A stretch of 64,000 bases of DNA from Thalia democratica. Lineage: Eukaryota. Both the position numbers and the translations under genes were made by a program. The DNA lies in the NCBI GenBank assembly GCA_965202585.1, contig OZ241829.1, forward strand, positions 37,014,001 to 37,078,000, in the 5' to 3' direction. The stretch's first letter is position 1. The number at the start of each line of letters is the position of its first letter. The notes beneath the pieces are model-generated. The model worked only from the letters and a program-made list of their open reading frames with translations. It was not told where the DNA came from and did no database searches. Below, in pieces: positions 12,532 to 57,751 of the stretch.

Positions 12532-12713
12532 CAGCGTTAAAGCGAGAAGGGGCAAGTACCTCACTCTTAGAACTTTAACCTTATATAGTTTTTTTATTTA
12601 ATACATCCTAGAAAAAGTATCAACAAATAGATAAGTAAGTTGTATTTTTTAGAATTGCTATTGATTAGCCCTATTTTAATAACTTTCAATTTTGTTACAC
12701 TCTTCTTTTTCAG
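12532..12713 (+). promoter_or_regulatory. Candidate 5' non-coding exon (12535-12634) and 5'-UTR intron of copy 1; equivalent 40352-40528 in copy 2
   Basis: Homology between copies starts at T-tract+CAG (CAG|CGTTAAAG.GAGAAGGGGCAA.TACCTC..TCTTAGAA.TTTAA.CTTATATAG). There are donors GTAAGT at 12635 and GTAAGA at 40456, and an acceptor CAG|A-ATG in both. TATATAG at 12582/40402 is an alternative TATA-box reading. Confidence 0.5.
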
Positions 12714-12714
12714 A

Positions 12715-15700
12715 ATGAGGAGCATTTCTATTGTCGCCCTTTTGGTGGCAGTTGTCTTCGCACAAGAAGTCCCACGTTAGTATTCAATAAAAAACTTTTG
12801 TTTCAACATATAAAAAATAAATAATCTTTTTTTTTTATAGCACCACCAGTACCCGAGTCCGCTTGCGTACTCACTGGAGACCTTCAGTTCGTCATTGACT
12901 CTTCATCGTCTATCGGTGAAGAAAACTTCGCCCTTGTCAAAGACTTCGTCTACGAAGTAAGAAAATAAACTTTTTTTTTATTATTTTTGGACATAATTTA
13001 AATTTTAAGTTAATAGAGGTATAAAATAAAAACACTGATGTCATTTATTAATCTTAACTAAAACAGGTTGTCTCGAACCTTGATGTCGGAAAAGACGCTG
13101 TTCGTGTTGGTTTGTCCAGGTACAACTCTTGGGTCGATCACAGGTTCTTTTTGAACACCATGACCGATAAGGACGCCGTCTTGGAAGAAATCCAAAACTG
13201 TCCTTACTACGGACGTGGCACAAGAACTGCCCAAGCTCTGTCCGAAGTTGCCGCTCACGCACTTCAGCCATACAATGGATACAGAGGACATCCCACCGCA
13301 GTTGTTGTAATCACTGACGGAAGAAGTCAAGATGCTGCTGGTCTTGCTGCTGCAGCTAAAGCCGTCAAAGGTAGTTTTACTAAAAAAGCAATTTAGTTTT
13401 TCACTATTTTATACTTTTATTTGATAACATTTTATTACAATTAAAATAAAATTTTGCAATCTACATCTAAAAAAAAAAACGAAATTTTCATCTTAAAAGA
13501 AACTGTATTTAAAAATCTAGTTAAAGCATACTCGACAGAAAATTTCAATTTCAATTTAAAGCTTAATAAACAAGTTTATTTGCTATTTGCAAACAAAAAA
13601 AAAAGATCGTACAAAAACAAAAATATTCAAACGAATTTTGTCTTATTAGCAAAAGCTACTCGCGTCATTGCCATCGGTATTGGACCTAACGTTGTTGGTG
13701 AGGAACTAGTCACCATTGCTTCTCAACCCAGTGACACCAACGTCTACATGACCCCATCTTTCGAAGAACTGTCCGGAGTTGTCGGAGAAATCCTCGAAAA
13801 GGTAATAATGCCTTAATAGTTATACCTCAGCTATTAAACTGGTTTAAAAAATAAGAAGATCGAAAAGTTTGATACATAAGTTTATACTGTTTGTTTTTGC
13901 TTGAAAGATACTTTTAAACACTAACACTTTTACAAATAATTTAACTTGCTTATATGTTAGTATGACTTTTGTTTGCAATAAAACAAAAAACTTTTAAGGT
14001 TTGTGAAATTGAAGACGATGTCAATGAGTGTGCCGTCGGAAACGGAGGTTGCCAAGTTGAATGCGTTAACACTTTGGGCGCCTACTACTGCGATTGCCCC
14101 GCTGGATATGTTCTTAGCGGAAGCACTGAATGTCAAGATGTTGACGAGTGCTTGGAAGAAAACGGTGGATGTGAAGGTGGTTGCGAAAACAGCATTGGAA
14201 GCTACACCTGTACTTGCCCCGAAGGACTTGTTCTCGGAAACGATGGACTTTCATGTGGTTAGTAAAAGTTTACAAAAAAAAATATTTAAGTTAAAATTGT
14301 TTTAGAAATTAATTCCTTTTACAGTTGAAGATAGCTGCTTCGGAAACGATGCATGCGCTCACACTTGCCAGAACGTCGAAGGCGGAGAGTTTGTCTGCGT
14401 TTGCGACGCTGGATACGAACTTGCTGAAGATCTCGTCAGCTGCGTAGGTTAGATAAAAAATAGTTTTTATTTTTTGCTACCTTGGATAAACTGTTTTAAA
14501 ATTTATATTGCATTTTTAAAGAAAAATTTAAGAGCAAATAAAAATCAAAGAAACTATTATTTCTACAAAATACGTTTAATAAGTAGGTAAAATTTAAAAT
14601 TATTGAAACTTCTATTTTTTGGAGACAATAAATAATGTATCATTCAAAAGTTTTATTAATAGAAATGTGCACAGAGTATAGTAAACAATTGTTTAATACT
14701 AAAATTTGAGTGCAAGATAAAAACGTAGCACAGTTTTTAAATTGTAAAAAAAAACCGCAAAGCATGTTGCTGTGGTTTTTAGAAAAAACTACAAATCTTT
14801 ATCGAAATCATCGACATTTAAACTTGTCCTTAGGCAAATTAACACGTCAACTTTAAAATTTAATATCTATAAAAAGTTTTAGTTTGTGAGCAGCTTTTAA
14901 AGTCAAAGAAAAAATTAATAACAATTGAATAATTTTATCTAGATAATTGTACAAAATACTAAAAAAAGGGTTTTCTCTAGAACCAAAAACATTCTTGATC
15001 TAATATTTTTTCAACTAAACTAGATATTGACGAATGCTTGGAAGGTATCTCAGGTTGTCAACACGGATGTAACAACACCGTTGGAGGATTCACTTGCTCA
15101 TGTCCCGAAGGTCAAGGACTTCGTGATGATGGTCTTACTTGTGGTACCATTTGCTACACTTGCGAAAATGTCCTTTCCAACGACGAATGCAATGAAGCCG
15201 TTATCTGCTCAGATTTGGAGGTAAAAAGAAAGCAGTGTGAAATTTATTTTATGACGTTGAGTTATGTTATAGGAAACCTTTAAGGCTTAACTTTATATAC
15301 TTGATGATAAAATAAATAAAAAATGACATAACATAAAACAAACGTTTAAACCATACACAGTTAGTATTATTATTAAAATATTATTATTTTACCGCGTGTT
15401 AAAGAATAATAAAATTTCAGACTGCCTGCCAAACTAAGACTCGTCTTGTCGATGGCCTTCTTTACATCACCAAAAGATGCAAACAGCCTGAAGCTTGCTC
15501 AAACAACCAAATTCAAAACCCCCGTGATGCTGTTGATATCAAGCAATGTCAACTCGAAGGAGAAGTATCTGTTTGCAGGTGCTGTTGCTTCGAATCATAC
15601 TGTAACTCCGCTGGCGACTGTGAAGATGCTGACAATGGTGTAAGATGCCCATCTACTGACACTCTTGTTCCACCTAACGGGGGAAGTCTTGAATGCTCAG

Positions 15701-18700
15701 GAAATGCTGTAAGTGTAGTTTTTAGTTATATCAAGTAACAACTTTTATTTATCTAAATGTCTTGTATAAATGTACAGATCGGTGATTCATGCGCCATTGT
15801 CTGCCCTGCCGGATACGCTCCTGCTAACGGAAACGATCAAGTTTTCTGTAACTTGAAACCAAGATCTTTGGAAGGTGCTTGGGTTGGAGAAATCTCACCA
15901 TGTGTTGACATCAATGAGTGTCTTGACAACAACGGAGGTTGTTCTCACGACTGCGTTAATTTGAACGGAACATACGAGTGCAGATGTCCCAATGAAAACC
16001 CATGTCAGTTCCAAGTATTCGATCTTTTGTTCATTGTTGACTCATCTAGTTCCATTGGTGAAGCTAACTGGGCTACTATGGTCAACTGGCTTAACACCGC
16101 TGCATCCCTCTTTACCGTCGGACAAGATTTCACAAGGGTAAGTACTTTTTTATGAGACATACAAGCGTTTTATTAATAAGATTTAAGTGTTAATTGGATA
16201 TATTTTTAATCAGATTGCTATGGTAACTTACAACAACAACCAAGTTGCAAGAATGTTCTTCAACGAAATTGACAGCATCGAAGAGTTCCAACAAGGTCTT
16301 GATGTTAGTTTAAGTGAACATACTAAGCCTTAAAAGTTTCAATAAGATTAGTTTAAAAGTTAAAAATACAACACATTGAAAACAGGGTATTATCTATGAA
16401 GGACGTGGTACTAGAACAGCTTCCGCTATCAGGTTCTCTGCCGCTGAAATGCTGTCAGCTGCTTCTGGACGTCGTGCTTTCGCACCATTGGCAACTGTAG
16501 TAATTACTGATGGAAGAGCTTCTGATAAGAGATTTATGGATGAAGCCCTTGCACAATTGGTTGCTGCTGGATCCGTCAACTTTGCCATTGGTGTTTGTAA
16601 GTAGCCTAAATTTACGTTTAATACTAGGGAATAGGCTTCTATAACCGAATATTATCATTGCAGCTGAAAACTCTAACGAAAAAGAGTTGTTGAAAATTGC
16701 TGGAGGAGTCTCAGCCAGATACAGGCAAGTTGACAACTTCGATGCCCTTACCGAAGAACTTCTTAGTGATATGAGCATTTGCATTGGTGCTGAAGATCAG
16801 CATTACATGACTGTGAGTTAAAGATTTTTTTGTTAAGTACCACTATAACTGTTTATTAAACTTGACGTTTTTACTAGTCTGACGGTAAAACTTGTGATGT
16901 CGATGAGTGCGCTTACGACAACGGTGGTTGCTCCGATGATTGTGCTAACACTATCGGTTCATACGTGTGCTTGTGTCCACCAGGTGAAGAAATTGTAAAC
17001 GACGGTAGAACTTGCGATCTCAACGAATGTGCTGTCGGAAACGGAGGTTGCTCTGGTGATTGTGTCAACACTCTCGGTGGTTTCCACTGCTTGTGTGACA
17101 ACGAATTCCAAGTTGTAAGTATTTTTTTTCTGACAGATTACTTAATTATTTAGAGTAGTAGTCAAAATATGATTTTTATAGGATGGAGTCGATTGTGTAG
17201 ACTACAATGAGTGCGCTGACGACAACGGCGGTTGCTCACATGATTGCGTCAATCTCGTAGGAAGTTTCGAATGTGTCTGCCCACCAGGACTTGCACTTGA
17301 CACTGACGGTCTCACTTGTGTTGCTGATAGCTGCTTTGGACGTGACCATCCTGAACTCTGTGAGCACATTTGCACCAGCATCCCCGGAGGCGACTACGTC
17401 TGCTCATGCCAAGACGGTTACGAACTTAGCGAAGACATGCACAACTGTACTGAAGTCAACGAGTGCGACCGCAACAACGGTGGCTGCCAATATGATTGCA
17501 TCAACTTCGAAGGAGGATTCGAGTGTGCTTGCCCAGAAGGTATGTTCTTGCACACTGATGGAAAGAGCTGTGTCATCCAATGTTACACTTGCGAAAATGT
17601 CGGATCAAACGAAGAGTGCAGCGACCTTGTTGTAAGTACTTTTGAAATAGCTAGTGTATGTAGAGTTATTCTTATTTTACTTATTGTGAATAATTTTTAG
17701 ACTTGTCCACCAAGCGAGACTGCTTGCTTCGCCACTATGCGTACACGTGGATCTGAAGTTCTTATTACTAAGGGATGCAAACAAGATCTTGCTTGTGTCA
17801 ACAATCTTGTCCAAAACCCACGCGACCAAGGTGAAGGTCCATCTCAATGCAACGTGAACGGAATCCACTCAAAATGCGAGTGCTGCTGCTTCACTACTGA
17901 ATGCAATGCTGACTTGTGCCCATACCCCAACGAATGTAAGAGTTTTTTTCAAAGATAAGATAAATACTAAAAAGACAAAACTCTAAGTTATAATTTTGTA
18001 CAGTACCAACTTGTGCATCTTTCGTCGTTGAGAACGTTGTTTTCCGTGGTGTTGATTTGGATGGTTCAATCCTTCCAGGAGGTGTTGCTGCACTTGTCTG
18101 CCCAGAAGGGTTTGAACCCAGCTTTGGAGATGCTGGAGTTACCAAGCTTAACTGCGTCTACGACATGCTCAACGGAACATCTGCTTGGGATGGTTCATCA
18201 GAAGACTTTGACGTTTGCGTTGGTCAGTAAAATATATATTAACTGTCTATATTAATGAATAGTTAAATAAAAAAATTGTTTTTAGATATTGACGAATGTG
18301 CTGTAGACAACGGTGGCTGCGTTGCACCAGCATCTTGTGTAAACTACCCTGGTGGTTTTGAATGTGTATGCCCAGACTTCCCAGAAGATTACATTCTCGT
18401 TGATGGAACTATCTGCGAAAGAGATGAGTGCGCAGATATCGACCAAGGAGGTTGTTCTCACAACTGTACTAACACCATCGGAGGATACATGTGCTATTGC
18501 CCTGGCGAGCTCAGCCTTGTTACTGACGGACTCACTTGCGGTAGGATTGCCTTATTAAAATAATTATAATCAAAAATTTTTCACAATGAACCAAAATTTG
18601 TATGATTAGGTGTTTAAAAAAATATGAAACAAAGTAAACAAATAACTTATAACTTCAGACATCGACGAATGCCGTGAAAACAACGGAGGATGTGTTGAAA

Positions 18701-21700
18701 TTTGCATCAACACTTTGGGAGGAAACGAGTGTGGTTGTCACAACGCTGGATATGCTGTCGGTGAAGACGGTGTTACTTGTGAAGATATCGACGAGTGCTT
18801 GACCGATAACGGTGGCTGTAGCGATGTTTGTGTAAATACTGACGGAGGCTTTGAGTGCTCATGCTCAGAAGGACGTATTATGAATGAAGATGGTATGACA
18901 TGCCGGTAAGTAGGATAATCACAAACTTAATAAAAATTATGAGCTAAAAAATAAACTTTAAAAAAATTTCTATCAATGATTTTTATAATAGTGATGATCC
19001 TTGCTTCCCTGACAACGGTGGTTGCGAACAACTCTGCATTGTCGATGGGGATAACACTATTTGCGCTTGTGAAAGTGGATTCACATTGAACGATGACGGA
19101 ACCTGCACTGATATTGACGAATGTGCTCCAGGAGTCAACACTTGTAGCTACAACTGCACAAACACCATTGGAGGTTTCCAATGTAACTGCCCACCAGGAA
19201 CTGCTTTGGATCACGATGGAATAACTTGCGGTAAGTTTAGAAATAAACTAAAAGAAGAACAATCTAAACAGGACAATTTTTAAAATGTTACTTTTACATT
19301 CTGATAGGATTTGCATGTTTCTCATGTCACGGAGCTGCTACTAACGAAGAGTGCAATGCTGGACCTATGGAAGTATGTAGACCAGACTCACAGGCTTGTG
19401 AAAATGAAGTTCGCGTCCACCACGGAAAGAAACAAATTTTCAAGAGGTGCAAACAAGAGCATGCTTGCAGAAACAACCAGATCCAGAACCCACGTCAAGC
19501 TTTCTTACCAACACAGTGTAATGGTGATGAAGAAAATGACGTATGCAGATGCTGTTGTACCAGCCATTTGTGTAATGAAGCCGAACGTGTTTGCAGCAAG
19601 AGATGCAACATTAACAAAGCCGATCTTGCTATTATCATGGACTCTTCAAGCTCTGTCAAAGTCAAGAATTTTAACACCATGAGATCTTTCGTTCAGAATC
19701 TCGTAAACGCTTTCCAGGTTGGAGTCGGAATGGTCCACGTAGCTCTTATTAGGTACATATATTCTGTTGCAATGCTTTAAATATTAAAATTAACTTTTTT
19801 TTAATTCTTAAATCTTAAAACAGGTACAACAAAAACGTCGATGTCCGTCGTACATTTGCTGACAGCCAAACTGCCAACGCAGTCATGGACGATGTTCGTC
19901 AAACTCCTTACAGAGGATCTGGAACCAGAACTGGCCAAGCCATTCAGTACGCTCTTGAAAACATCTTCAAGACAGGAAATGGTATGAGAGCTGATGTTCC
20001 TCAAATCTTGGTCACAATTACTGATGGAAAGTCACAGGTTAGAATTTGTAAATGCATTTTCATATTTAACTAATTTATATCATAAAGTGCGTGAAGAAAA
20101 AAAAATATGAATATGTTCTTACCTAAGATAGTTTATTTATAACATTAGTATAGTTTTAAATAAAAACCAAACTAAATCAACTGTTTTAATTTTAGGATGA
20201 TGTTCTTGCCCCAAGTGAAGCTATTAGAGCAGCTGGAATTTCAACCTACGCCGTTGGTATTGGTACCACAATCGACAGATCTGAGGTTGTAAAGATATCT
20301 GGAGCCGAAGACCGTGCTTTCACCACTGCTTCTTTCGCTGCTTTGGAAACTACTGTACTTGAAAACATCCGTGTTTCTCTTTGCCAGAGTTAGTTTTATG
20401 CAAGATTATATTAAAAAAAAAATACTGAACAAAAAAAACTACTAATACATTTTTTAGACAAAGACGAATGTTTGGTTAACAATGGCGGTTGTTCTCATAC
20501 TTGTACTGACACTGACGGTTCATACATGTGTTCTTGCCCTGAAGACTTCGTTCTTAGTGGAGATCTCCGTACTTGCGTCTCAATCGCCGGTAAGATTTCT
20601 TACTATAAATAAAAAAAAAATTACTTAGTGATTAAAGATTATATAAGAACGATTAATGAAAATTAAAAAATGTATATATACTATTAGGATAAATTATATT
20701 TCAACTTTTGTTTTCAGAAAACCCTGATCAAGTTGATAATGTTGATGAGTGTGCCGATGACAACGGTGGCTGTACTCACACTTGTCAAGATACTGAAGAA
20801 GCATACGAATGCTTGTGTCCTGATAACATGTACTTGGAAGCCGACAACAAAACTTGCGCAAGTATGTAGACCTTCCTTTCGTTTTATATCTTGAAATACT
20901 TACATTAATTTAAACAAACTTTAAAGGCATCGACAACTGTGCTAGCAGCCCATGTGAACAGCAATGTGTCAATACTTTAAGTGGATACTTCTGTGAATGC
21001 GGTGCCGGATTTGTCCTTAATGCCGATGGATCAACTTGCTCCGCACGCACAACTGCTGTAGGCTGTGGTGCCGGATTCTCTCCTCTTGGACAAACTTGTG
21101 TTGCTGTTGTAGATGTTGCCACTTCTTTCGCTGACGCTGCAGCCGCTTGTACTGGTTTGGGAGCACGTTTGATGGCTGTCAATGACCTTGGAACTGCTAT
21201 TTTGGTCGGACGCGTTGCTGCCGGAGCTTGGGTTGGTTCATCAAGCGAACTTGAAGCTGGAGTATTTGTTAACTCTGACGGAAACGTCAATGCTTTGGAC
21301 AACTGGGCTGATGGTTCACCTGGAGATTTCAACAAGTGCGTGTATGTTGATGCAAACGGAAAGTTCAACACTGATAATTGTCTTTTCCGTAGACAAGCTG
21401 TCTGTGAAAAAGGTTTGCAACTTGTTAAAGCGAATAAAGTTATAAATTATTAAACTAAATTAATATTTTTTAAATAGCTCGTGCCGGTGGAGAAATTGCC
21501 TTCCTCAGTACCTGGCCAAATGGTGCTCAAGCTAGAGCTTCCTGGGTCACCGGATCACCATTCTTGAAGGTTTCAATGCCTACCATGATCAAGAGCGTAT
21601 CGGTAAGTTTTTAAACACACTATAATTAAACATAAAAAGTTATGTTTCGAACTTATTATTAATTGTTTGCAGTCATGGTTCTGTACTGTTGTGAGAAACG

Positions 21701-21861
21701 AAGGTAGCGCAGTGATCTTCTCTCAGAGCGATCTCGAGCGTGTATCTGGAAATGGATACTGCGAATTCGTTTTCGAAGGAAAAGAACAAGTACCAGTTGG
21801 TAGCTGCACAGTAGAAGCACTGAAAGATAGTAATAGTAATGGTGATTATGATGATTATTAA
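12715..21861 (+). CDS. Large secreted vWA/EGF/Ly6(three-finger)/CCP/C-type-lectin mosaic protein, copy 1 (27 coding exons, 2039 aa)
   Basis: Manually spliced exons, all GT-AG with consistent phases, total 6120 nt: 12715-12775, 12841-12956, 13067-13370, 13650-13801, 13999-14257, 14325-14447, 15024-15220, 15421-15708, 15778-16137, 16214-16303, 16386-16596, 16664-16812, 16878-17114, 17182-17631, 17701-17935, 18004-18222, 18286-18540, 18659-18905, 18992-19230, 19308-19752, 19824-20037, 20196-20388, 20458-20589, 20718-20861, 20927-21412, 21478-21602, 21673-21861. It starts with signal-like [20 protein letters not shown]. It has three vWA domains with DSSSS/GTRT/ITDG MIDAS residues, 19 EGF repeats (many D-I/V-D/N-E-C calcium-binding type), 3 Ly6-like, 2 CCP and 1 CTLD, and no transmembrane segment. 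It ends GDYDDY*. Confidence 0.93.
12864..14004 (+). other. vWA domain 1 of copy 1 (Cys-flanked, intact MIDAS)
   Basis: [18 protein letters not shown] ... GRGTRT ... [10 protein letters not shown] ... ILEKVC. Confidence 0.9.
15152..15621 (+). other. Ly6/uPAR (three-finger)-like domain 1, 14-Cys variant; paralogous domains at ~17581-17920 and ~19316-19590
   Basis: CxxC start, CKQxxAC, NNxxQNPR and C-x-CCC-x4-CN-x3/5-C end are present in all three. Confidence 0.75.
15907..16895 (+). other. EGF domain interrupted by vWA domain 2 (copy 1; copy 2 equivalent 43937-44908)
   Basis: DINEC..C..C..C.CP-NENP-[[17 protein letters not shown]...SDMSIC][16 protein letters not shown]. EGF Cys1-5 precede the vWA and an EGF-type SDGKTC ending follows it. 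Confidence 0.75.
21064..21405 (+). other. C-type lectin-like domain of copy 1 (within exon 25, 20927-21412; copy 2 exon 25 is 49260-49745)
   Basis: [13 protein letters not shown]...[15 protein letters not shown]...WVG...NWADGSPG...KCV...NTDNC...VCE. It lacks EPN/QPD and WND. Confidence 0.8.
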
Positions 21862-27300: not shown

Positions 27301-27597
27301 TGTAGGTGAAAACTAGAATAAAATCAGTGTTTTTATAAAAACTTACTCAATAAAAATGTCAATTAATTACGTCAAAAGATTTTTTCTTACTAACTAAGAT
27401 ATTTCCCATCAGAACAAAAGGCGTCATCCATAAAATAGCACCTTTCTAAAATGTTTTGCTTTGTGCGTTTTTATCTAACAAACAAGTTTATTTTAAACTT
27501 TAAAATGCTCAATAGAAGTCAAATGTAAAATTTAAAAAATTGAAAATAACATATTCTACTTAAACTATTCAATAAAATTTAAATGATAACTTCTATA

Positions 27598-27692
27598 GTC
27601 CTTGACAAGACGCTAAAAGGTATCCGTGGTGTGCGACTCGATAACCAAAAGGTTCTTCGTACACCAGCTCTTAGAACCAAATATTTTAAGCG
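27598..27692 (+). repeat. SINE-like dispersed repeat, copy 2
   Basis: Reverse complement of the 496-605 core. Confidence 0.7.
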
Positions 27693-27959
27693 TGTCATAG
27701 AATACGGTTACAAGTGTCTAAAAACGATAAAAATTTATTTTAAGGGTTTGTGACAAATATTTTTAACCTTTTCAACATCTGTTAAACTTATTATTTATAA
27801 ATATATATATTTTTTTACCTTCAGTTTGTCAGTAAAATACTTAAATCTTTCAAAGTTCACTAGCTTAACGATAAAAAAGCTTATAAAATACATTTTCTTC
27901 TGTAAAAAACTCAAAAATAAGATAGGTATACTGACTAAATTTATCTTACAAAATTTTAA

Positions 27960-29949: not shown

Positions 29950-32450
29950 CAAAGAAAAATCGTTAGTTTTGATAATTTAAGTTATTTTTGTAGTTGTTTT
30001 TATTGTACCCAAACGAACTTGCTTCGTTTTGTATTTTTATTAAAAACCAACATTTACTACCAGCATTTTGTATATTTTGTTTTGTTTTAGTAAATATTTG
30101 TTGATTTCGACGCTTTGATCTCAGATGAAAAACTTTCCAGCTTATCTCATATCCTACTTTGTTACTGGCAAATTTGTGAATATGTTTATTAAGTTTAGTT
30201 TCTTGTACGTATAGTTTTTGTTTTCAGTTTTGGATCAAATGTAGTTTCATGGGTTGTTATACTTTCTTAAATTGAATAATTCTTTACCTAACGTAAACTT
30301 TGGTTTCACTGTCTGTTTTGATTTTGGCTATAGAAAATTTTGGTAAATTAAAACGTTTTGTTTTCAGTAAGTACTTCCCTATAAAGGCATGGCTTTTTTA
30401 TTGTAGTTGCAGGATAAAATAGAATCATTGTTGTTTGTTAGTATTAGCCTTTGTTGTGGCTTGTGATGTTCGGCTTGGAACTGTAGATTAATTTTACGTT
30501 ATTTGAATAAAAACAATTTTCTGCATTGGTGATCACAGATTTACAAGATTTAGGGTAAAGTTATATACTATTACGTTTTCTATTTCTTTTCTTTTAAGTC
30601 TTCATAACTCATTTCGTTTTTTGATACCTTTGATTTTAGTGGGTTGTTTGTAACTTTTTCTGCACTGTCAAATCTCCCATGACTACTAAATCTCAAGTTG
30701 TTTTATTTTACTGCTGGGTGTGAGGTTTATTAAACATTGAGTAAGGCATAGCTGATTTGGTTGTTAAAATTTTTGGAGGTGTAACAGGAATTTTTGTAGT
30801 GTAGTTGAAATCTAGAAAGTTTACCATCAGTGCTTGCATGACTTATCGAATGTAGCTTTGATTCTAACTACCTGAAAATTTCGTGTTTGTTTTTATTTTC
30901 TGCTGTTTCATCTTGTTGTTTTTTTATCGCTAATAATCTGTTATCTCTACTTAGTCTTATTTGTGTTTTAACCTTTCTAGCAAATAATGTCCGGTAGGGT
31001 GATTCTGTTACCCCAACTTTTGAATTTCGCTTAGTAAAATTTTTTGACGTTGGAAAATCACATGAATAGAAAGCACAAAAAAAAATAGTATCCTAGCTTT
31101 AAGTTTTCTGATGTAAATTATTTTTGAAAATTTAGTTTTATATTGGTATATTTATGAAGGGGAAAAAAGACTTTTTCACTAAAAATCTATTTTCTCTTAC
31201 GTTTTTTGAGATAATTACTTGAAACGGCTAGGAAATGTTCCTTGCTATATTTAGATATTTTGTTATAACAAAATTTAGAAAAATAAAAATAAAAATTATG
31301 CGAAAATAACATAAACATTTTTTTTTTCTTCTACATACATGAAATCTCATTTTGTGATGTAAATAGTTGATAATAACAAAATTTTAAAATGAGTGAAAAA
31401 AAAAACATAAAAAAATTATTAAAAAAAAAAAAAAAAAATAACTGATTTTATTTTTGTAATTTTTGCCATAATTTTTTTTTCTGTTTTAATTTTGTTGAGA
31501 CAGAACTTTCTAAATATAGCAAGGAACATTTCCTAGCCGTTTCCGGTAATTATCTGAACAAACGTGGGAGAAAGTAGATTTTTAGTGAAATAGTCTTTTT
31601 CCCCTTTATAAAAATACCAGTTAAAAGCTAAACTTTCAAAAGTATTTTGCTCCAGCAAACTTAAAGCTAGGAAGCTTATTTTTTTTACTTTCTATCCATG
31701 CGATTTCCCAACGTCAATAAATTTTACTAAGTTAAATTCCAAAACTTTCATTTTTGAGGGGCAACAGATTCACTCTAATGTCCGGCTATTTGACACACTT
31801 CTGCATATTTTAATCTCATTGTTATACCAAAAGTATAAGTTCCATCGCTGAAACTTTTATATATACTTTATATATTTGCATCGTACTGATCGTTGATTGG
31901 TTAGGACCGACTTTGCTAAAATTTTTATTTCATTGCTAGTTCCAGCTCTTTCTATCAAAGTTCCCTTTATACTTAGGGATAGAATTTTTTTAATGGAATT
32001 TTATAACTTTTATCTAGTTTATCTTAGTGTTTCATACAACTGTACAACTTACTCACTGCTAGTCAACTGATTTAGTTTATCAGATTTACATTTTTTTGTT
32101 GGAGTTCTCTAAAGTTATTTAGCTTATGTAACTTATTTCCGAGTATGTCAGATTGATCAGTCTTGTTACTGATATCTGTTCAAGTTGCCTTTGTAGTTTC
32201 AGTCTTCAAGCTTCAAAAGTTTATTTGCTTCTTCGTTAATAGAATTTACTAAATCTTTAAATTTTCTAATTTATGTTATTTTTTTCTAACAGCAGTAATT
32301 AGCATTTTGATGTGTTCCTATTTTGTTGTTTTGTAGAAATTTGAGTATTAAATGTTCCAAAGCTTTAAAAAATTCTGCTAAATTTTTAAGTTTAAATTTA
32401 ACTTTCTTAACAAAATTCCAATTCTTTTTACGTACAATGTATATTTTGTT
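29950..32450 (-). mobile_element. Highly degraded LINE relic (ORF1 end / AP-endonuclease start), interrupted by a MITE
   Basis: The minus strand is strongly A/C-rich. It carries the motif YVQETKL at 30191-30211 (APE QETK motif), and a remnant resembling an ORF1 Cys/His knuckle lies near 30830-30880. There are many stops and the boundaries are approximate. Confidence 0.4.
30995..31777. mobile_element. hAT-type foldback MITE, almost entirely palindromic, with perfect 8-bp TSD
   Basis: Termini are TAGGGTGATTCTGTTACCCC and GGGGCAACAGATTCACTCTA, with imperfect arms of ~350-400 bp. ATGTCCGG lies at 30987-30994 and 31778-31785. Confidence 0.85.
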
Positions 32451-37675: not shown

Positions 37676-40529
37676 TATAGTAAAATAAAAGTTTGACATG
37701 TGAAGTGCACCCGATGCAAATAACACCCGATACAAAATGTTTTTAAATTTATACAATTTTAAAATCTAGGAAAAAACTATTTTTTACTTTAAATCTAGGC
37801 TTAATTTTAATTTGTTTAAAACAAAGAAAAATATTTTTTTACAACTGAAACTTTTATTAAGTTGCTCAAAAACCAAATAATAAAATATATGATCATTTTG
37901 AGTGTTTAGTGAGTAAAAAATGTTATTTTTTTATATAAAATATTGCACAAGCTTTTGAATAAATACTTTACAGGTTAATATTAAAACCTTTGTTGAAAAA
38001 AAAAAGTTTATTAAGCATAACTTCATTCAACAATCTTATATAGTTTGGTACAGGGATTTTTAAATAAAGCTATAACTAATTAAATTAAGCAAATTGAATA
38101 CAAAACTAATTTAATAATTGATTTTTTTTGCGTGGCTGTAAAAAAAACAAATAATGTTTGTACGTTGTAAACAAATTACCTAAGCTGTTTGTTCGCAACA
38201 TTTTATCTGTTGTTACAAGTTTTCTTTCATACTTAAAACTTAAACTTGTATGAAAGGCTCGGTAAAGTTGCCAAAATAAATGTAATAACAAGTTTGTTTA
38301 ACAACAAAATAAGATGTAACAAAAATACTAAAGTATATAAATTTATGTATTGTATTGTTTTATTAAAATTGGTCGGAGTTATTTGACCAAACATTCTAAA
38401 AAATGCAATAACAAAACTAAAAGCATATTGAAAGCTTTGAGTCATATATCTAAACCATGATCTTTTCAGTATATGATACAATTTATATTTAAATAGGTCG
38501 AAACAATAATGTTCAAAACAAAAATAAAACTGAAAAAATTATTTACTTTAGTTTTATTTAATTTTTTTTTTTAATTTGATTCAAAAAAAACAACTTTTAA
38601 AACTGGTTTAAGCTTTTTTAAGGTAAATCCAATCTAGAATAATTATTTACCTTTACAAAATAACCTAGTTGATCTACAAATAAAACCGTATTAAAAATTT
38701 TGCACGTAACAGAAAACATTTGTAAACTTGTTAGTTTTGTTTTCGCTCAAAAGTTACAACAATTGTTTTAAAAACAAGTTTTCTCTTGTGAATTTTTACA
38801 CTTGAAAACTTTTACTAGAAAGTAAATTCATACAATTATAATTATTACAAAGGTTTTTAGGTATAATTTAGATGCTGTTTAACATTTTTTCAAATAAAAC
38901 GTGTTTTATTAAGTTTTGATATACTTATTTATAATATCTGTCTATTTTAAAGTTCAAAAATTAAGATACTGCTGAAAATATTACTTTTGTTTTCTTTAAC
39001 GTGACCCAATTTATTATCTAAAGAAAAGTTCTGAAAAGTTTACACTTTAAGCAGTAGTTTTTTTTTTTCTGGCTAGTATTGATTTTATAAACATAAGTAG
39101 CTTTAATTTAACAAAATTGTAGTCTTATGAAGATAAATTTTGAAAACTAATAAAAAGTTACAACAAACTTATATGTTAAACAACCCAATTGAAATATCTA
39201 ACAATATTAAACTATAGTTCCAGATAAGTAATAATATAACTGTTAGCAACTAGATCATAAACTTTAAATCAACTATGACATTAAGATGCTACAGTGTTAA
39301 AAGTTAAATACAAATAGTGTTTAATGAAAATTTTGCAGTTATTTTAGAATTTATAAAATGCAAAACCAAAGTTATTATCAAATTTAATTATAAATCTTAA
39401 GTTTAGAACTTTTATTTTTTTTTAATTATGTTAAAAATTTAATAGCTTTCGTTGGAACATTATGTTATAGCATTTATGACATGAAAAACAACATGATCTA
39501 CAAAAATATTTGATCGAAATTTCAAAGAAAAGTAAGAAAACTACCGTACTTAACTGGTACCATGTAAAACTTGTAAGGATGTTTAACAACATAGTTGCTA
39601 CTTACTTGACTTTACTTTACTTACGTTCATTTTATTATTTAATTTAATAATAAACAAAACAGCAGCCTTAGTTTAATATAATTTTTTTTCAACTTAGACT
39701 AAGTAGAGGCAATAATGTAAGTAGATAATAATTTAATTGTGTGCTAGTTTTCGTATCTAGATTACGTTTACAAAACTTTTCAAATAACTAAAAAGTATTA
39801 AAAATCAAAAGTTTTAATGAACTTTTACTTGAACAAAATTTTTATCTTTCAGAAAGACTGCTTACACAATTCCACGTTTTATGGTTTTATTTTGTGGCTG
39901 TTAGTGTTTCAAACGCTTAAAGTCATTTTATGTGTTATTTTTTCCAATTAAGAAAACATTAATAAAGAAATGTATGCTTTGTTGACATGCCTCCAGGCCT
40001 TTTTAATTCCTATTTAAAAAGCTTAATTTTCCATCTAAACTATAATCAAAAATGTTTTACACCAAGCTTGTAAAGTTGTTTTAAGACTAAATTTAAAGCT
40101 TTTTGATTATGAAGTTAGCTTAAAAATTCTTAAAAAAAGTAATTGTTATATTAGAAATGAATGTTTTAAGTTTTTGAATAAGCATCTTTCCGAAATTGAA
40201 TTAAAGTGTAATATTTTCAAGATTAAGGGTTAAGATGAGCTGGACAAAAATTATCAAAGAGAATATGTAGTTTAAAATGTTAAAATATAGCTACTTAAAA
40301 CTGTTGTATTTTTTTGGTGCTTAAACAATTAACGAAACGAGTTTAATTTTTCAGCGTTAAAGTGAGAAGGGGCAATTACCTCGATCTTAGAATTTTAAGC
40401 TTATATAGTTTTTAATTTAACTCTAAAAATAAAAGAAAGGTCTGCATTAGTACAGGTAAGAAATCAACTACGATTTAATAATTAAATAGTAACGTTTAAC
40501 ATAAATTATTTTGATACAAAACAAACAGA

Positions 40530-43500
40530 ATGAGGTGCATTTCTTTGGTTGCCCTTTTGGTGGCAGTTGTCTTCGCTCAAGAAGTCCCACGTTAGTATTC
40601 AATAAAAAACTTTTGTTTCAACATATAAAAAATAAATAATCTTTTTTTTTTCATAGCACCACCAGTACCCGAGTCCGCTTGCGTACTCACTGGAGACCTT
40701 CAGTTCGTCATTGACTCTTCATCGTCTATTGGTACAGAAAACTTCGCCCTTGTCAAAGACTTCGTCTACGAAGTAAGAAACTAATGTTTTATCTCTTCTC
40801 AATTTTGAACATAACTTAAAAGCAATTTAGTGAGATATTCATATTTTGTTGAACATTTTTGTTCAATGAATGACTTCTACAGTTTCCTAAAAAGTGATGT
40901 GACTAACCACACTAAACAGGTTGTCTCGAACCTTGATGTCGGAAAAGACGCTGTTCGTGTTGGTTTGTCCAGGTACAACTCTTGGGTCGATCACAGGTTC
41001 TTTTTGAACACCATGACCGATAAGGACGCCGTCTTGGAAGAAATCCAAAACTGTCCTTACTACGGACGTGGCACAAAAACTGCCCAAGCTCTGTCCGAAG
41101 TTGCCGCTCACGCACTTCAGCCATACAACGGATACAGAGGACATCCCACCGCAGTTGTTGTAATCACTGACGGAAGAAGCCAAGATTCTGCTGGTCTTGC
41201 TGCTGCAGCTAAAGCAATTAAAGGTAGTCTAAAACGTGATTTTTTTGTACAAATAGTCTTTAGAATCCTATAATAAACTAAAAATAACAATATTGCTCTA
41301 CTCATGGTTTTATAACACTTTTTAACAGTTTGATTATAATAACATTGCTTTAAAACTTTACTACTATCCTAATTTACAGCTAAAGCTACTCGCGTCATTG
41401 CCATCGGTATTGGACCTAATGTTGTCGGTGATGAATTAGTCACCATTGCCTCTCAACCCAGTGACACCAACGTCTACATGACCCCATCTTTCGAAGAGCT
41501 TTCCGGTGTTGTCGGAGAAATCCTCGAAAAGGTAACATCATCAATTTGTTTATAACTGATTTAGTAATCGAAGTTGAAAAAATAATTTATACTTTGTTTT
41601 TGTTTGACAATAAGTTTGTATTTTCAATTTAGCTATTTATTACTTATTTATGTTTCTGGTTTTTAATTGATAAACTTTTAAGGTTTGTGAAATTGAAGAC
41701 GATGTCAATGAGTGTGCTGTCGGAAACGGAGGTTGCCAAGTTGAATGCGTTAACACTCTGGGCGCCTACTACTGCGATTGCCCCGCTGGATATGTTCTTA
41801 GCGGAAGCACTGAATGTCAAGATGTTGACGAGTGCTTGGAAGAAAACGGTGGATGTGAAGGTGGTTGCGAAAACAGCATTGGAAGCTACACCTGTACTTG
41901 CCCCGAAGGACTTGTTCTCGGAAACGATGGACTTTCATGTGGTTAGTAAAAGTTTACAAAAAAAACTATTTAAGATAACTTTGTTTTAGAAATTAATTCC
42001 TTTTACAGTTGAAGATAGCTGCTTCGGAAACGATGCATGCGCTCACACTTGCCAGAACGTCGAAGGCGGAGAATTTGTCTGCGTTTGCGACGCTGGATAC
42101 GAACTTGCTGAAGATCTCGTCAGCTGCGTAGGTTAGAAAAAATAAACTATTCACTCCGTCATAAAATGAATTATTTAATGACAAACATGTTTTCTGTGTC
42201 ATTTTTATAGAACTTAATGGGAATACTATAAAAAGTGATAGTTTATGAAACTTACTTTTTATATCCACAAGTTTTGTTCTTTTTTAATCGTAACAAACTT
42301 ATGTTTTTTATAGATAGCTGAAATTTATTTGTTTTGTAAAAGTTTGTCTTAAAGTAAAAACACTTCGCTGGCCAGATATTTTTGTTGGCGGGTGTAACGT
42401 GACTTACCCTTAACTTAAAGCTATTAAAAAGTAACAAAATACATTTTTGAGAAAAAAGCATGTGGTAAGCGTTGAAATAAAAAATATATTTGTTTAAGCG
42501 TAAATATAAGACCTAAATTATATATTTAAATGACTGCTTTAAATTACTTAAAATATTTTTTACCAACAATAAACGAGACAAGCCTTGTACAAAATTCAAT
42601 TTTTAAATACTTTTTTACTAATAAACTTTTTAACTCTAATTGAACAAATTTTAAAAGCATTTGAAACTTTAATTGCTATAACTTTTAACCATAATTTTCA
42701 AGCTTTAAAAACAAACTTTTCAAAACTTGTGGTAACTTATTAAATTATGTATCTTAACATAACGTATCACGATTTGGTTTTGCGGGTAGAAACACACCTA
42801 GATATACTATAGGTGTATCAAAGTTTTATAACCACTTTAAAAGTTTAGCGGTTTGTAAGTACATAAATTAGAGGCCACTAAATACTGCGGTCGATAAACA
42901 GAAACCACGTATATGTCTTTAGGCAAGTTTACACGTGAGCCGAAAACGACAACATTTTGATAAAAACTTTTTAACTAATATGTATATAAACAACTATCTC
43001 AAAACTTATTTGTCAACTACTTCTTAGGATAGTTTTAACAAAATATAAAATAGATATTGACGAATGCTTGGAAGGAACATCGGGTTGCCAACACGGATGT
43101 AACAACACCGTTGGAGGATTTTTGTGCTCATGTCCCGAAGGTCAAGGACTTCGTGATGATGGTCTTACTTGTGGTACCATTTGCTACACTTGCGAAAATG
43201 TCCTTTCCAACGACGAATGCAATGAAGCCGTTATCTGCTCGGATTTGGAGGTAAAAAGAAAGCAGTGTGAAATTTATTTTATGACGTTGAGTTATGTTAT
43301 AGGAAACTTTTAAGATTTAACTGTATATACTTAATGATAAAATAAAAATAAAATGGAATAACATAAAACAAACGTTTAAACCATACACAATTAGCATTAT
43401 TATTAAAATATTTTTATTTTACCGCGTGTTAAAGAATAATAAAATTTCAGACTGCCTGCCAAACTAAGACTCGTCTTGTCGATGGCCTTCTTTACATCAC

Positions 43501-46500
43501 CAAAAGATGCAAACAGCCTGAAGCTTGCTCAAACAACCAAATCCAAAACCCCCGTGATGCTGTTGATATCAAGCAATGTCAACTCGAAGGAGAGGTATCT
43601 GTTTGCAGGTGCTGTTGCTTTGAATCATACTGTAACTCCGCTGGTGACTGTGAAGATGCTGACAATGGTGTAAGATGCCCATCTACTGACACTCTTGTTC
43701 CACCTAACGGAGGAAGTCTTGAATGCTCAGGAAATGCTGTAAGTATAATTTTTAGTTATATCAAGTAATAACTTTTATTTATCTAAATCTCTTGTATAAA
43801 TGTACAGATCGGTGATTCATGCGCCATTGTTTGCCCTGCCGGATACGAACCTGCAAACGGAAACGATCAAGTTTTCTGTAACTTGAAACCAAGATCTTTG
43901 GAAGGTGCTTGGGTTGGAGAAATCTCACCTTGTGTTGACATCAATGAGTGTCTTGACAACAACGGAGGTTGTTCTCACGACTGCGTTAACTTAAACGGAA
44001 CATACGAGTGCAGATGTCCCAATGAAAACCCATGTCAGTTCCAAGTATTCGATCTTTTGTTCGTTGTTGACTCATCTAGTTCAATCGGACCTGACAACTG
44101 GGCTACTATGGTCAACTGGCTTAACACCGCCGCATCCCTCTTTACCGTCGGACAAGATTTCACAAGGGTAAGTACTTTTTTTTAGGGAAATACTGTTTAA
44201 AATCAAACAGTTTGTTTTTGTAGATTGCTATGGTAACTTACAACAACGACCAAGTTGCAAGAATGTTCTTCAACGAAATTGACAGCATCGAAGATTTCCA
44301 AAAAGGTCTTGATGTTAGTTTAAGTGAACATACTAAGCCTTAAAAGTTTTAAAAAGATCATTTTAAATGTTGAAAATACAACACATTAAAAACAGGCTAT
44401 TGTCTATGAAGGACGTGGTACTAGAACAGCTTCCGCTATCAGGTTCTCTGCCGCTGAAATGCTGTCAGCTGCTTCTGGACGTCGTGCTTTCGCACCATTG
44501 GCAACTGTAGTAATTACTGATGGAAGAGCTTCTGATAAGAGATTTATGGATGAAGCCCTTGCACAATTGGTTGCTGCTGGATCCGTCAACTTTGCCATTG
44601 GTGTTTGTAAGTAGCCTAAATTCACGTTTTATACTAGGGAATAGGCTTCTATAACCGAATATTATCATTGCAGCTGAAAACTCTAACGAAAAGGAATTGT
44701 TGAAAATTGCTGGAGGAGTCTCAGCCAGATACAGGCAAGTTGACAACTTCGATGCCCTTACCGAAGAACTTCTTAGTGATATGAGCATTTGCATTGGTGC
44801 TGAAGATCAGCATTACATGACTGTGAGTTAAAGATTTTTTTTTTGTTAAGTACCACTATATCTGTTTATTAAACTTGACGTTTTTACTAGTCTGACGGTA
44901 AAACTTGTGATGTCGATGAGTGCGCTTACGACAACGGTGGTTGCTCCGATGATTGTGCTAACACTATCGGTTCATACGTGTGCTTGTGCCCACCAGGTGA
45001 AGAAATTGTTAACGACGGTAAAACTTGCGATCTCAACGAATGTGCTGTCGGAAACGGAGGTTGCTCTGGTGATTGTGTCAACACTCTTGGTGGTTTCCAC
45101 TGCTTGTGTGACAACGAGTTCCAAGTTGTAAGTATCTTTTTTCTGACAGATTACTTAATTATTTAGAGTAGTAGTCAAAATATGATTTTTATAGGATGGA
45201 GTCGATTGTGTAGACTACAATGAGTGCGCTGACGACAACGGCGGTTGCTCACATGATTGCGTCAATCTCGTAGGAAGTTTCGAATGTGTCTGCCCACCAG
45301 GACTTGCACTTGACACTGACGGTCTCACTTGCGTTGCTGATAGCTGCTTTGGACGTGACCATCCTGAACTCTGTGAGCACATTTGCACCAGCATCCCCGG
45401 AGGCGACTACGTCTGCTCATGCCAAGACGGTTACGAACTTAGCGAAGACATGCACAACTGTACTGAAGTCAACGAGTGCGACCGCAACAACGGTGGCTGC
45501 CAATACGATTGCATCAACTTCGAAGGAGGATTCGAGTGTGCTTGCCCAGAAGGTATGTTCTTGCACACTGATGGAAAGAGCTGTGTCATCCAATGTTACA
45601 CTTGCGAAAATGTCGGATCAAACGAAGAGTGCAGCGACCTTGTTGTAAGTATTTTTGAAGTAGCTAGTTTATGTTGAGTTATTATTATTTTACTTATTGT
45701 AAATAACTTTTAGACTTGTCCACCAAGCGAGACTGCTTGCTTCGCCACTATGCGTACACGTGGATCTGAGGTTCTTATTTCTAAGGGATGCAAACAAGAT
45801 CTTGCTTGTGTCAACAATCTTGTCCAAAACCCACGCGACCAAGGTGAAGGTCCATCTCAATGCAACGTGAACGGAATCCACTCAAAATGCGAATGCTGCT
45901 GCTTCACTACTGAGTGCAATGCTGACTTGTGCCCATACCCCAACGAATGTAAGAGTTTTTTTCAAAGATAAGATAAATACTAAAAAGACAAAACTCTAAG
46001 TTATAATTTTGTACAGTACCAACTTGTGCATCTTTCGTCGTTGAGAACGTTGTTTTCCGTGGTGTTGATTTGGATGGTTCAATCCTTCCAGGAGGTGTTG
46101 CTGCACTTGTCTGCCCAGAAGGGTTTGAACCCAGCTTTGGAGATGCTGGAGTTACCAAGCTTAACTGCGTCTACGACATGCTTAACGGAACATCTGCTTG
46201 GGATGGTTCATCAGAAGACTTTGACGTTTGCGTTGGTTAGTAACAAAATTATTATTAACTGTCTATATTTATGAATAAATAAATATAAAATTTGTTTGCA
46301 GATATTGACGAATGCGCTGTAGACAACGGTGGCTGCGTTGCACCAGCATCTTGTGTAAACTACCCTGGTGGTTTTGAATGTGTGTGCCCAGACTTCCCAG
46401 AAGATTACGTTCTCGTTGATGGAACTATCTGCGAAAGAGATGAGTGCGCAGATATCGACCAAGGAGGTTGTTCTCACAACTGTACTAACACCATCGGAGG

Positions 46501-53809: not shown

Positions 53810-53828
53810 GAAAAATATACAGTTTATT

Positions 53829-53940
53829 GAACGACAAAAAGACGCTCAAAATGTTTGGTTCAAGAAGCTGGTGCACGAAGAACCTTTCGGTTATCGAGTC
53901 GCACACCACTTGGATACAGTTTAACGTCTCTTGTCCAGGA
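53829..53940 (-). repeat. SINE-like dispersed repeat, copy 4
   Basis: Identical ~40-nt core to copy 1. Confidence 0.7.
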
Positions 53941-57115: not shown

Positions 57116-57751
57116 TGCATATCTCTCACTTACACAAGTTAAAAAGTGCTGAAACAACTGTAAAAACTTTGATTTCTTTAATGTGCAATATACTACTTAA
57201 ATTGTTTAAAACTATTGCACGATACGATTTTATAAAAGTACTTATCGCTTCACTACTTTGCATTTTCCAGCAAAGCTCAATTTTATTTAGTAGTTGTTCT
57301 TTGAGCAAAATAAACAAATACTTGTATATTAATTTTTATATCAGGAAACGTAACGTTTATAGTTCCATAATAACTTTAAAAACATTTTGAATTCTAAATT
57401 TAAAATTTTAAATGTAGTTCTATAAAGTTATGATAGTATGTGTGAATAAACCTAACATGTTAAAATTCGAACACCTATTTAAAAATATTAGGAAAAATGT
57501 CTAGGCAGACTAATTATTCAGACTTAAAATCGTTAGCTTGTAATATTTTATTTCTAAAAGAACTTTTGGTATTTTATTAAACAAAAATAAAACAAAAGTA
57601 AATAAAACAATTTTAAGAACTTTTTTTTTGCATATTGTTTTTTACTTTTTTTGCATATCTTATACACTAGCATTCTTTATTTTTAAACTACTTAATTTAG
57701 CTAGGATAGGTTTTTTTTTTATTAAGCTAAAAAATAAGCATAACTTAACTG

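Follow-up and report, generated by a model that had tools for sequence, protein, structure and literature searches.

A candidate nested domain: a vWA domain in the Cys5-Cys6 loop of a calcium-binding EGF in a tunicate mosaic protein

Background

Extracellular mosaic proteins are usually built like beads on a string, by the shuffling of whole modules, and nested modules are rare, the textbook cases being the I-domains of integrins and the L4 domain of laminin. The window analysed here, a stretch of 64,000 nucleotides of Thalia democratica (contig OZ241829.1, positions 37,014,001 to 37,078,000), raises the question of whether a complete vWA domain can be housed in the last loop of a calcium-binding EGF (cbEGF), as an earlier sequence-only reading had claimed. 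A vWA in a cbEGF would add a third nested case, with a very small host, and, if true, would mean that an EGF can accommodate a guest of about 185 residues in its Cys5-Cys6 loop. At present, domain annotators give only a truncated EGF at the host site.

Results and discussion

Layout of the unit

The encoded protein of this pelagic tunicate is a secreted mosaic of about 2040 residues that combines a C-type lectin domain with vWA, cbEGF, Ly6 and CCP modules. By codon mapping, the split-EGF/vWA unit starts at 15907 with the D of D-I-N-E-C and ends at 16895 with the codon of Cys6, and it lies on exons 9-13 (15778-16137, 16214-16303, 16386-16596, 16664-16812 and 16878-17114), of which all introns are GT..AG. 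Its parts in the window are as follows.

15778..16137, + strand: exon 9, encoding the C-terminal half of CCP1, cbEGF Cys1-Cys5, the PNENP linker, the N-flanking Cys of the vWA and the first ~45 vWA residues
15907..15987, + strand: N-terminal two thirds of the host cbEGF, with the Ca-binding D-I-N-E-C start, Cys1 to Cys5 (profile positions 1-30 of 40)
15988..16002, + strand: five-residue linker P-N-E-N-P from Cys5 to the N-flanking Cys of the vWA; P-x-x-N-P in most orthologues by alignment
16003..16782, + strand: guest vWA, 185 residues from N-flanking to C-flanking Cys, on exons 9-12 (introns 16138-16213, 16304-16385 and 16597-16663)
16783..16895, + strand: post-vWA hairpin, by sequence the C-terminal third of the host cbEGF (profile positions 29-40), ending in S-D-G-K-T-C with EGF Cys6
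16896..17114, + strand: rest of exon 13, with two complete cbEGFs by translation (Pfam EGF_CA 1-43/43, E 2.7e-13)

The four cysteine codons at the junctions are at 15985-15987 (Cys5), 16003-16005 (vWA N-flank), 16780-16782 (vWA C-flank) and 16893-16895 (Cys6). In the mRNA, Cys1-Cys5 of a cbEGF are thus followed by P-N-E-N-P, a Cys, a 183-residue vWA, a Cys, a 15-residue hairpin that ends in Cys6 and, directly after it, the next cbEGF; with respect to sequence, the proposed position of a complete vWA within the last loop of an EGF holds, with exact coordinates, and it is borne out by the RNA and the homologues described below. The translation of exon 9 places the EGF/vWA junction inside the exon, with no intron between the two domains, and Pfam finds EGF_CA 1-32/43 and then VWA 1-39 on this exon. 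On the C-terminal side, a phase-0 intron (16813-16877) near the junction splits the hairpin itself, and its joint, 16812>16878, is present in four RNA runs. Because the N-junction has no intron and the C-side intron lies within the hairpin, the arrangement is not a product of simple exon shuffling, as had been argued from the sequence.

The host cbEGF in two complementary halves

The host EGF carries the Ca-binding consensus D/N-x-D/N-E/Q-C (as D-I-N-E-C) and C3-x-N-x4-[FY]-x-C4, and it is matched from profile position 1 by Pfam EGF_CA (PF07645) and by FXa_inhibition. It is not a contiguous six-Cys module of about 40 residues, as the EGF_CA match stops at 32/43 and Cys6 comes 205 residues after Cys5. 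We built a cbEGF profile of 40 positions from 130 cbEGFs of the split-EGF protein family, in which the part before the vWA corresponds to positions 1-30 and the post-vWA hairpin to positions 29-40. These two halves complement each other: by sequence, the hairpin supplies the C-terminal third that the cbEGF lacks ahead of the vWA, in agreement with its earlier designation as an EGF ending. When the vWA was removed in silico, the remaining sequence matched the profile end to end (1-40); this construct scored only 2-3 bits above the N-terminal part, which is not enough to tell apart the two disulfide models considered below, and in this test the coordinates are informative and the score is not. 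The next cbEGF (D-V-D-E-C) begins four residues past Cys6, which is the normal spacing of tandem cbEGFs.

An internal comparator is available among the canonical cbEGFs of the same protein:

18286..18416, + strand: uninterrupted cbEGF after CCP2 (RNA-confirmed exon model, translation)

This cbEGF, which corresponds to the host EGF without its guest, aligns with the host on both sides of the insertion point; the host counterpart of its Cys5-Cys6 segment reads PNENP ... EDQHYMTSDGKTC. At the level of sequence, the host resumes after the guest, and both halves are needed to fill one profile. An AlphaFold2 model (pTM 0.65) has two short strands in the hairpin, at 288-290 (H-Y-M) and 297-299 (C-D-V); with a pLDDT of 68 for the Cys5 linker and of 60-70 along the hairpin, the model does not confidently dock the hairpin.

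The guest vWA

Pfam VWA (PF00092) matched the guest over its full length (1-169/174, E 1.8e-29, 103.6 bits) in the near-identical protein P0159, and the vWA blocks of the AlphaFold2 model mostly have a pLDDT of 83-93. The model was compared with 48,161 PDB chains by VIA-align. It superimposes on the integrin alpha-1 I domain with Z 27.9 and an rmsd of 1.6 over 180 residues, and Z is 24-28 for integrin alpha-I, collagen VI N5/N2 and vWF A1/A3 (24-26 for vWF A3, A1 and A2); among the matches listed, integrin alpha-I domains were the best (Z 24-28). The full-length profile match and the Rossmann-like alpha/beta fold of the model indicate that the guest is a genuine vWA. The VIA-align comparison was meant to find a tandem-EGF chain bridging the vWA gap, but the 50 matches listed were almost all vWA-containing chains. 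In structure searches of AFDB and the Atlas, the matches were again proteins with vWA and EGF in series (matrilins, VWA2, and nematode MUA-3 and MUP-4).

The D-x-S-x-S, T and D residues of the MIDAS, a predicted metal site, are intact in the guest. They are also kept in 11 close orthologues (D109, S111, S113, T180/T182 and D213 of alignment A1), consistent with the MIDAS assignment of the sequence-only reading, and the motif is degenerate (D-x-S-x-N) in three distant homologues.

Conservation of the junction cysteines

None of the four junction cysteines (Cys5, the two that flank the vWA, and Cys6) varies among 14 homologues taken from several tunicate genera, with Ciona intestinalis, Clavelina and Styela among them, which argues that the layout did not arise by chance. 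The Cys5-to-vWA junction is also kept in a C. savignyi fragment (P0026) and in all four Ciona RefSeq isoforms. The C. savignyi AFDB models H2Y970 and H2Y967 are fragments, each with one side of the junction. As read from these alignments, the split-EGF layout is kept in all sea-squirt relatives examined. Among 360 proteins fetched, the junction of a truncated EGF with a vWA was seen only in the tunicate family and in the relatives P0070, P0154 and P0200. Multi-EGF proteins dominated a search of 1.84 billion representative proteins with exon 9, and only three among the matches listed share the truncated-EGF junction.

In the alignment, the flanking cysteines of this vWA (vWA2) fall where vWA1 and vWA3 of the same protein have their terminal clasp cysteines, which supports the proposal that both the Cys following NENP and the SIC Cys belong to the vWA. 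In vWA1 and vWA3 the next cbEGF starts two to five residues after the C-terminal clasp Cys, and the clasp cysteines of vWA1 must bond to each other, because no other unpaired Cys is nearby. The segment from about residue 96 to 284-286 of the AlphaFold2 model matches vWF A3 921-1110 and vWF A1 1270-1464, and we take Cys97 and Cys281 of the model to lie within a few residues of the terminal disulfides of vWF A3 and A1.

P0154 and P0070 have a second Ly6-CCP-EGF[vWA] unit, homologous to the Thalia unit (29% identity, E 4e-33), in which both clasp cysteines are absent together and Cys5 and Cys6 are kept. Note that this clasp-less unit has one extra internal Cys, giving an odd count and an ambiguous pairing.

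Disulfide pairing and proposed architecture

Comparative arguments are what favour a Cys5-Cys6 bond across the vWA together with a clasp of the vWA itself. The predicted disulfides would be Cys1-Cys3 and Cys2-Cys4 as usual, flank to flank in the vWA as in vWF A1 and A3, and Cys5-Cys6 across the guest. We assign a probability of roughly 60% to this reading, a true nested domain in which a clasped vWA with a MIDAS motif would sit in the Cys5-Cys6 loop of the cbEGF. With such a pairing, the minor hairpin of the host EGF would still pack on the next cbEGF, so that the calcium-stiffened EGF rod would stay continuous past the vWA, which would hang sideways on two short linkers (5 and ~6 residues) and turn its metal-ion binding face outwards. 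Rod tension would pass through the Cys5-Cys6 bond, bypassing the vWA; we infer both the sideways display and the mechanical shielding of the guest. This would be a natural design for mounting a binding domain on the side of a rigid rod while avoiding its unfolding by rod tension.

The best-surviving alternative is that the cysteines bond locally, Cys5 with the N-flanking Cys to close a tiny C-PNENP-C loop and the C-flanking Cys with Cys6 to close a 15-residue loop. The EGF would still be split in sequence, with the vWA in line and not covalently bypassed, and what remains would be an EGF cut short, a vWA with no clasp, and half an EGF standing alone as a hairpin that caps the next cbEGF. The spacing from the C-flanking Cys to Cys6 (14-15 residues) is near that of Cys5 to Cys6 in the normal cbEGFs of the family (10-14), the conserved P-x-x-N-P could be a tight turn, and pLDDT is low at both linkers. 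Moreover, several orthologues have P-E-P-E-G-x-Y-Y-L after the C-flanking Cys. The profile can place this Cys at Cys5, as it does in P0264 and P0265, which fits a local loop from the C-flank to Cys6 equally well. However, the flanking cysteines fall exactly in the clasp columns of vWA1 and vWA3, and under local bonding the joint loss of the clasp cysteines in P0154 and P0070 would imply the breaking and re-pairing of two disulfides. We consider local bonding unlikely, although it is a serious competitor.

A mixed or non-canonical pairing, in which at least one of the four cysteines is free or interchain (e.g. for multimerisation) and the hairpin is functionally part of the next cbEGF, seems improbable. 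Several orthologues do have one or two additional cysteines within vWA2, and the P0154/P0070 unit has its odd count, but the four junction cysteines are invariant in the 14 homologues and P0159 has an even number of cysteines (182) after the signal peptide.

Transcripts and the gene model

Every splice junction of exons 9-13 was seen, in frame, in spliced RNA contigs from marine metatranscriptomes (four runs), so that the splice pattern which the sequence-only reading had put up beforehand as a test of itself was confirmed throughout. For exon 9, the RNA joints are 15708>15778 and the one leaving 16137. A single RNA contig of 2609 nt is spliced across 14000 to 17631, and the length of its exon 9-13 stretch fits the predicted exon lengths. 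No splice skipping the vWA was found among the metatranscriptome RNA joints listed, nor a vWA-skipping form among the four Ciona RefSeq isoforms, whose only differences are close to the N-terminus. The reading of the unit as a gene-model or assembly artefact, in which vWA exons from another transcript, or normally skipped, would hide an ordinary EGF, has a C. savignyi database model without the vWA in its favour (P0011, H2Y974, running from C-S-C-P-D-S-N-P straight into S-N-R-S-D-G-H-T-C, and probably itself a prediction artefact), but it is already contradicted by the exon shared by the N-terminal EGF part and the start of the vWA, by the in-frame RNA contigs of four runs, and by the presence of the vWA in both genomic copies, in full-length transcript-derived proteins and in all four Ciona isoforms, and we give it hardly any weight.

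Comparison with known systems

No description of an EGF-hosted vWA or of a split EGF was found in the literature searched, in line with what the sequence-only reading had supposed; there is, however, a precedent for an EGF-type host, since laminin has its L4 domain inserted in an LE domain, between Cys3 and Cys4, where the rod keeps its packing as though no domain had been inserted and the guest sticks out to the side (PMC5338690). In laminin L4-in-LE, and in the LF domain that follows a truncated LE5 in laminin beta, a globular domain likewise interrupts an EGF-type disulfide-knot module in a tandem rod. The laminin host is an eight-Cys LE with the insertion between Cys3 and Cys4, whereas the tunicate host is a six-Cys calcium-binding EGF with the insertion in the Cys5-Cys6 loop, and the laminin guest is a CBM35-like beta-sandwich, whereas the tunicate guest is a MIDAS vWA with its own putative clasp.

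In integrin I domains, no disulfide clasps the termini, and signalling to the host works through a movement of the C-terminal helix; in the tunicate vWA, the predicted clasp would restrain such a movement. Like the tunicate guest, integrin I domains are nested domains of vWA fold with adjacent termini and a MIDAS site presented away from the host. In the established integrin architecture (see also PMC12422189), alpha-I is a vWA in a loop of the beta-propeller, and beta-I is a vWA-like domain in the hybrid domain, which is itself inserted in the PSI domain; the integrin hosts are thus a propeller or a hybrid domain, whereas the tunicate host is an EGF.

Matrilins, AMACO/VWA2 and collagen VI-type proteins were the closest named fold clusters for the vWA with the following EGF, and they share with the tunicate protein a clasp-type vWA adjoining a (cb)EGF. 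Their domains are strictly serial, a complete six-Cys EGF and then a vWA, whereas the EGF before vWA2 is truncated. We rejected an identification as a matrilin on this ground and because the matrilin coiled-coil (PF10393) is absent among the Pfam domains of P0159. Nematode MUP-4 and MUA-3 were considered as a possible second nested case; PMC2150763 places the vWFA after the eighth EGF repeat.

The Ciona intestinalis protein XP_026693868 resembles the tunicate protein in length and in the order of its domains, and is 47% identical to it across 100% of the region searched. From domain counts, this protein is probably Ci-meta1, a metamorphosis-associated secreted EGF protein that is switched on at metamorphosis, and the tunicate gene family is probably that of Ci-meta1. 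The count of 19 EGFs agrees with the available text of PMC3760835, which describes Ci-meta1 with no mention of a split EGF. Since the family is probably the same, Ciona could serve as a tractable model in which to test the layout.

We hold the wider proposal with slightly less confidence than the nested reading itself, at somewhat better than even odds: the Cys5-Cys6 loop of a cbEGF would host a whole MIDAS vWA by means of two stacked disulfides, a design conserved in ascidians and pelagic tunicates and used twice in one relative, which would mount a ligand-binding domain on the side of the stiff EGF rod, out of the path of the load, and would be the first EGF-hosted vWA.

A tandem paralogue

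The window contains a second copy of the unit, placed by pairwise mapping, translation and a GT..AG check:

43937..44908, + strand: split-EGF/vWA unit of copy 2 (codon coordinates)

The two copies had been called identical, which is correct for the junction residues and the exon structure; over 349 residues there are 10 differences, and the N-terminal half of the vWA holds nine of these. At 16053-16065, the letters of copy 2 are present in RNA contigs from runs X1 and X5, suggesting that copy 2, or a similar allele, is transcribed.

Structure and splicing of the gene around the split EGF

The window is AT-rich (29% GC), the introns around the unit are short (about 65-85 bases), and joining 15778-17114 over four GT..AG introns gives a single open frame on translation. 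The elements encoded by this frame are, in order:

C-terminal half of a CCP domain
calcium-binding EGF (cbEGF), from D-I-N-E-C to its fifth cysteine (Cys5)
P-N-E-N-P
flanking Cys (N-flank)
vWA domain (vWA2, the second of three in the protein)
flanking Cys (C-flank)
16-residue segment
D-V-D-E-C of the next cbEGF

The D-V-D-E-C starts immediately after the 16-residue segment, the hairpin, which ends in the sixth EGF cysteine (Cys6). Codon positions agreed with the extent given to the unit previously, the EGF opening at base 15907 and the Cys6 codon closing at base 16895. No intron separates the N-terminal EGF part from vWA2, three introns (phases 0, 0 and 1) lie inside vWA2, and the intron nearest the C-terminal junction is a phase-0 intron inside the hairpin. 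As the sequence-only reading had argued, this does not fit a module inserted with symmetric-phase introns at its borders. An intron at 14447-15024 of the gene is 576 bases long, compared with 63-200 bases in its neighbours.

A sequence search found the sequence of the unit in marine plankton metatranscriptomes. When contigs from four metatranscriptome runs were mapped on positions 14000-19500, all the predicted junctions were seen as GT..AG skips (15708>15778, 16137>16214, 16303>16386, 16596>16664, 16812>16878 and 17114>17182), so that the splice pattern around exons 9-13, on which the proposed nesting depended, was the predicted one. A single 2609-nt contig was spliced from 14000 to 17631, its internal length agreeing with the predicted exons, and no joint skipping vWA2 was found among the joints listed for these contigs.

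A vWA domain within the last loop of an EGF

Pfam assigned exon 9 to positions 1-32 of 43 of EGF_CA, followed by the start of VWA within the same exon. In P0159, a metatranscriptome protein of 2040 residues that shares about 86-99% identity with the exons of the window, Pfam recognised vWA2 as a full-length VWA domain (1-169 of 174, E 1.8e-29). vWA2 has the MIDAS residues (D-x-S-x-S, T and D), which are also kept in the 11 close orthologues. An AlphaFold2 model of the CCP-EGF[vWA]-EGF-EGF fragment, made from a 14-sequence alignment, had a mean pLDDT of 84 and a pTM of 0.65, and in a structure search its core matched the integrin alpha-1 I domain (Z 27.9) as well as collagen VI N5 and N2 and vWF A2, A3 and A1 (Z 24-26).

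We used 130 canonical six-Cys cbEGFs from the protein family to build a cbEGF profile of 40 positions. The segment before vWA2 matched positions 1-30 and the hairpin alone matched positions 29-40. When everything from flank Cys to flank Cys was cut out in silico, the whole profile (1-40) was matched end to end, with an insert of 8 residues where the pieces meet; at the level of sequence, the two pieces are thus the complementary halves of a single cbEGF. As a natural control, the EGF after the second CCP of this protein is uninterrupted, and its 16-residue Cys5-Cys6 segment aligns on both sides of the guest with C-PNENP ... EDQHYMTSDGKT-C.

Sequence searches identified full-length orthologues in Ciona intestinalis (XP_026693868, 47% identity), Clavelina lepadiformis and Styela clava, together with a Ciona savignyi fragment, several marine sequences and the more distant P0070, P0154 and P0200; the best named relatives were tunicates throughout, which, with the planktonic origin of the RNA, points to a pelagic tunicate as the most likely source. 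Cys5, both flanking cysteines and Cys6 are invariant in the 14 aligned homologues, at near-constant spacing (5-7 residues from Cys5 to the first flanking Cys, 14-15 from the second to Cys6), and the unit is kept in all four Ciona RefSeq isoforms. Among 360 proteins compared, including matrilins, collagen VI and vWA-EGF proteins of molluscs, annelids and amphioxus, the junction from a truncated EGF to a vWA occurs only in this family. The layout noticed earlier is thus confirmed, and sequence, splicing and conservation support the reading of a vWA nested in the last loop of an EGF; whichever disulfide topology holds, the EGF sequence is interrupted, and vWA2 leaves and rejoins the chain at one point.

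The gene model of P0011 (Ciona savignyi H2Y974) leaves out Ly6-CCP as well as the nested vWA, so that a plain EGF with six cysteines remains, in contrast to P0026 (H2Y970) of the same species. This form is probably a prediction artefact; no similar isoform was found among the RNA joints listed or among the Ciona intestinalis RefSeq isoforms.

Cysteine pairing and putative arrangement on the rod

The pairing proposed earlier, in which Cys5 would bond to Cys6 across the guest while the flanking cysteines clasp vWA2, appears probable (roughly 0.6). When the three vWA domains of four orthologues are aligned, the flanking cysteines of vWA2 share their columns with the flanking cysteines of vWA1 and vWA3. 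The C-terminal Cys of vWA1 and vWA3 stands two to five residues ahead of the next complete cbEGF. vWA1 directly follows the signal peptide, and its flanking pair must, judging from the sequence, close on itself because there is no other free Cys nearby. The part of the model matched by vWF A3 (chain residues 921-1110) and A1 (1270-1464) covers residues 96 to 284-286, so that model Cys97 and Cys281 presumably lie no more than a few residues from where these domains have their terminal disulfides.

The distant relatives P0154 and P0070 each have two Ly6-CCP-EGF[vWA] units, of which the first along the chain is homologous to the unit of the window (29% identity, E 4e-33).

Residues of the Ly6-CCP-EGF[vWA] units
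P0154: 345-640 and 975-1270
P0070: 14-301 and 646-933

In this first unit, both clasp positions are non-Cys, Cys5 is kept, and a Cys stands in the place of Cys6, four residues ahead of the next E-C; the unit reads as the nested design with its clasp naturally missing. The nested topology is favoured because it requires the loss of a single disulfide, a simpler change than the breaking and re-pairing of two that local loops between Cys5 or Cys6 and the adjacent flanking cysteines would require. Such local pairing seems less likely. Several points count against the nested topology: an extra internal Cys gives the clasp-less unit an odd Cys count, the homologues P0264 and P0265 have P-E-P-E-G-x-Y-Y-L after the C-flank Cys and the profile can align that Cys with Cys5, and the model has low pLDDT at the first linker (68) and over the hairpin (60-70).

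The hairpin has an aromatic residue (Y, F or H) in 10 of the 14 homologues, and the following cbEGF has the canonical four-residue spacing and a full calcium-binding consensus, features that would allow normal cbEGF-to-cbEGF packing to persist past the guest. The termini of vWA domains lie side by side on the face opposite the MIDAS site; for this reason vWA2 would project from the rod on short linkers, its metal site pointing outward. If Cys5 and Cys6 are bonded, rod tension would bypass vWA2.

Comparison with known proteins

The closest precedent for the EGF-type host is laminin. There, L4 interrupts an LE domain between its Cys3 and Cys4, the beta-chain LF domain comes after a truncated LE, and in both cases packing along the LE rod is as if there were no interruption (PMC5338690). 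A guest of the vWA fold has its precedent in the alpha-I and beta-I domains of integrins. No description of a vWA inside an EGF was found in the literature searched. Matrilins, VWA2/AMACO and collagen VI share their kinds of module with this protein, but arranged in series. Ci-meta1 of Ciona has 6 EGF and 13 cbEGF repeats (PMC3760835) and is probably the orthologue, since this count matches that of the window protein.

AFDB matches to Q21281 (MUP-4) and to A0A077ZD21 and A0A0V0ZQG4 (MUA-3-like) covered roughly 360-370 of the 376 model residues over an EGF-vWA-EGF segment. MUP-4, like MUA-3, is a nematode matrix receptor with a single vWA, and two Ciona isoforms of this gene are named 'mua-3' by NCBI.

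Tandem duplication and other repeats

The whole gene of about 9 kb occurs in tandem (12711-21858 and 40526-50191, about 93-98% DNA identity), with a 95.4% match between 15016-20060 and 43046-48068. The second copy had been described as identical, which holds for the exon structure and the junction residues; in the unit segment 10 of 349 residues differ, with nine of the changes falling in the N-terminal half of vWA2. At 16053-16065, contigs from metatranscriptome runs X1 and X5 carry the exact copy-2 letters and those from X2 the copy-1 letters; therefore both genomic copies, or alleles like them, are transcribed.

Other repeats in the window
57747-58234 and 59298-58803: inverted pair, about 490 bases, 97% identical, outside both gene copies
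31018-31315 and 31744-31451: inverted pair, about 300 bases, 83% identical, outside both gene copies
488-613, 27588-27693 and 53821-53940: element of about 100 bases, both orientations, 85-88% identity

The inverted pairs may be mobile-element ends or a hairpin-forming duplication, and the recurring element is probably a short interspersed repeat.
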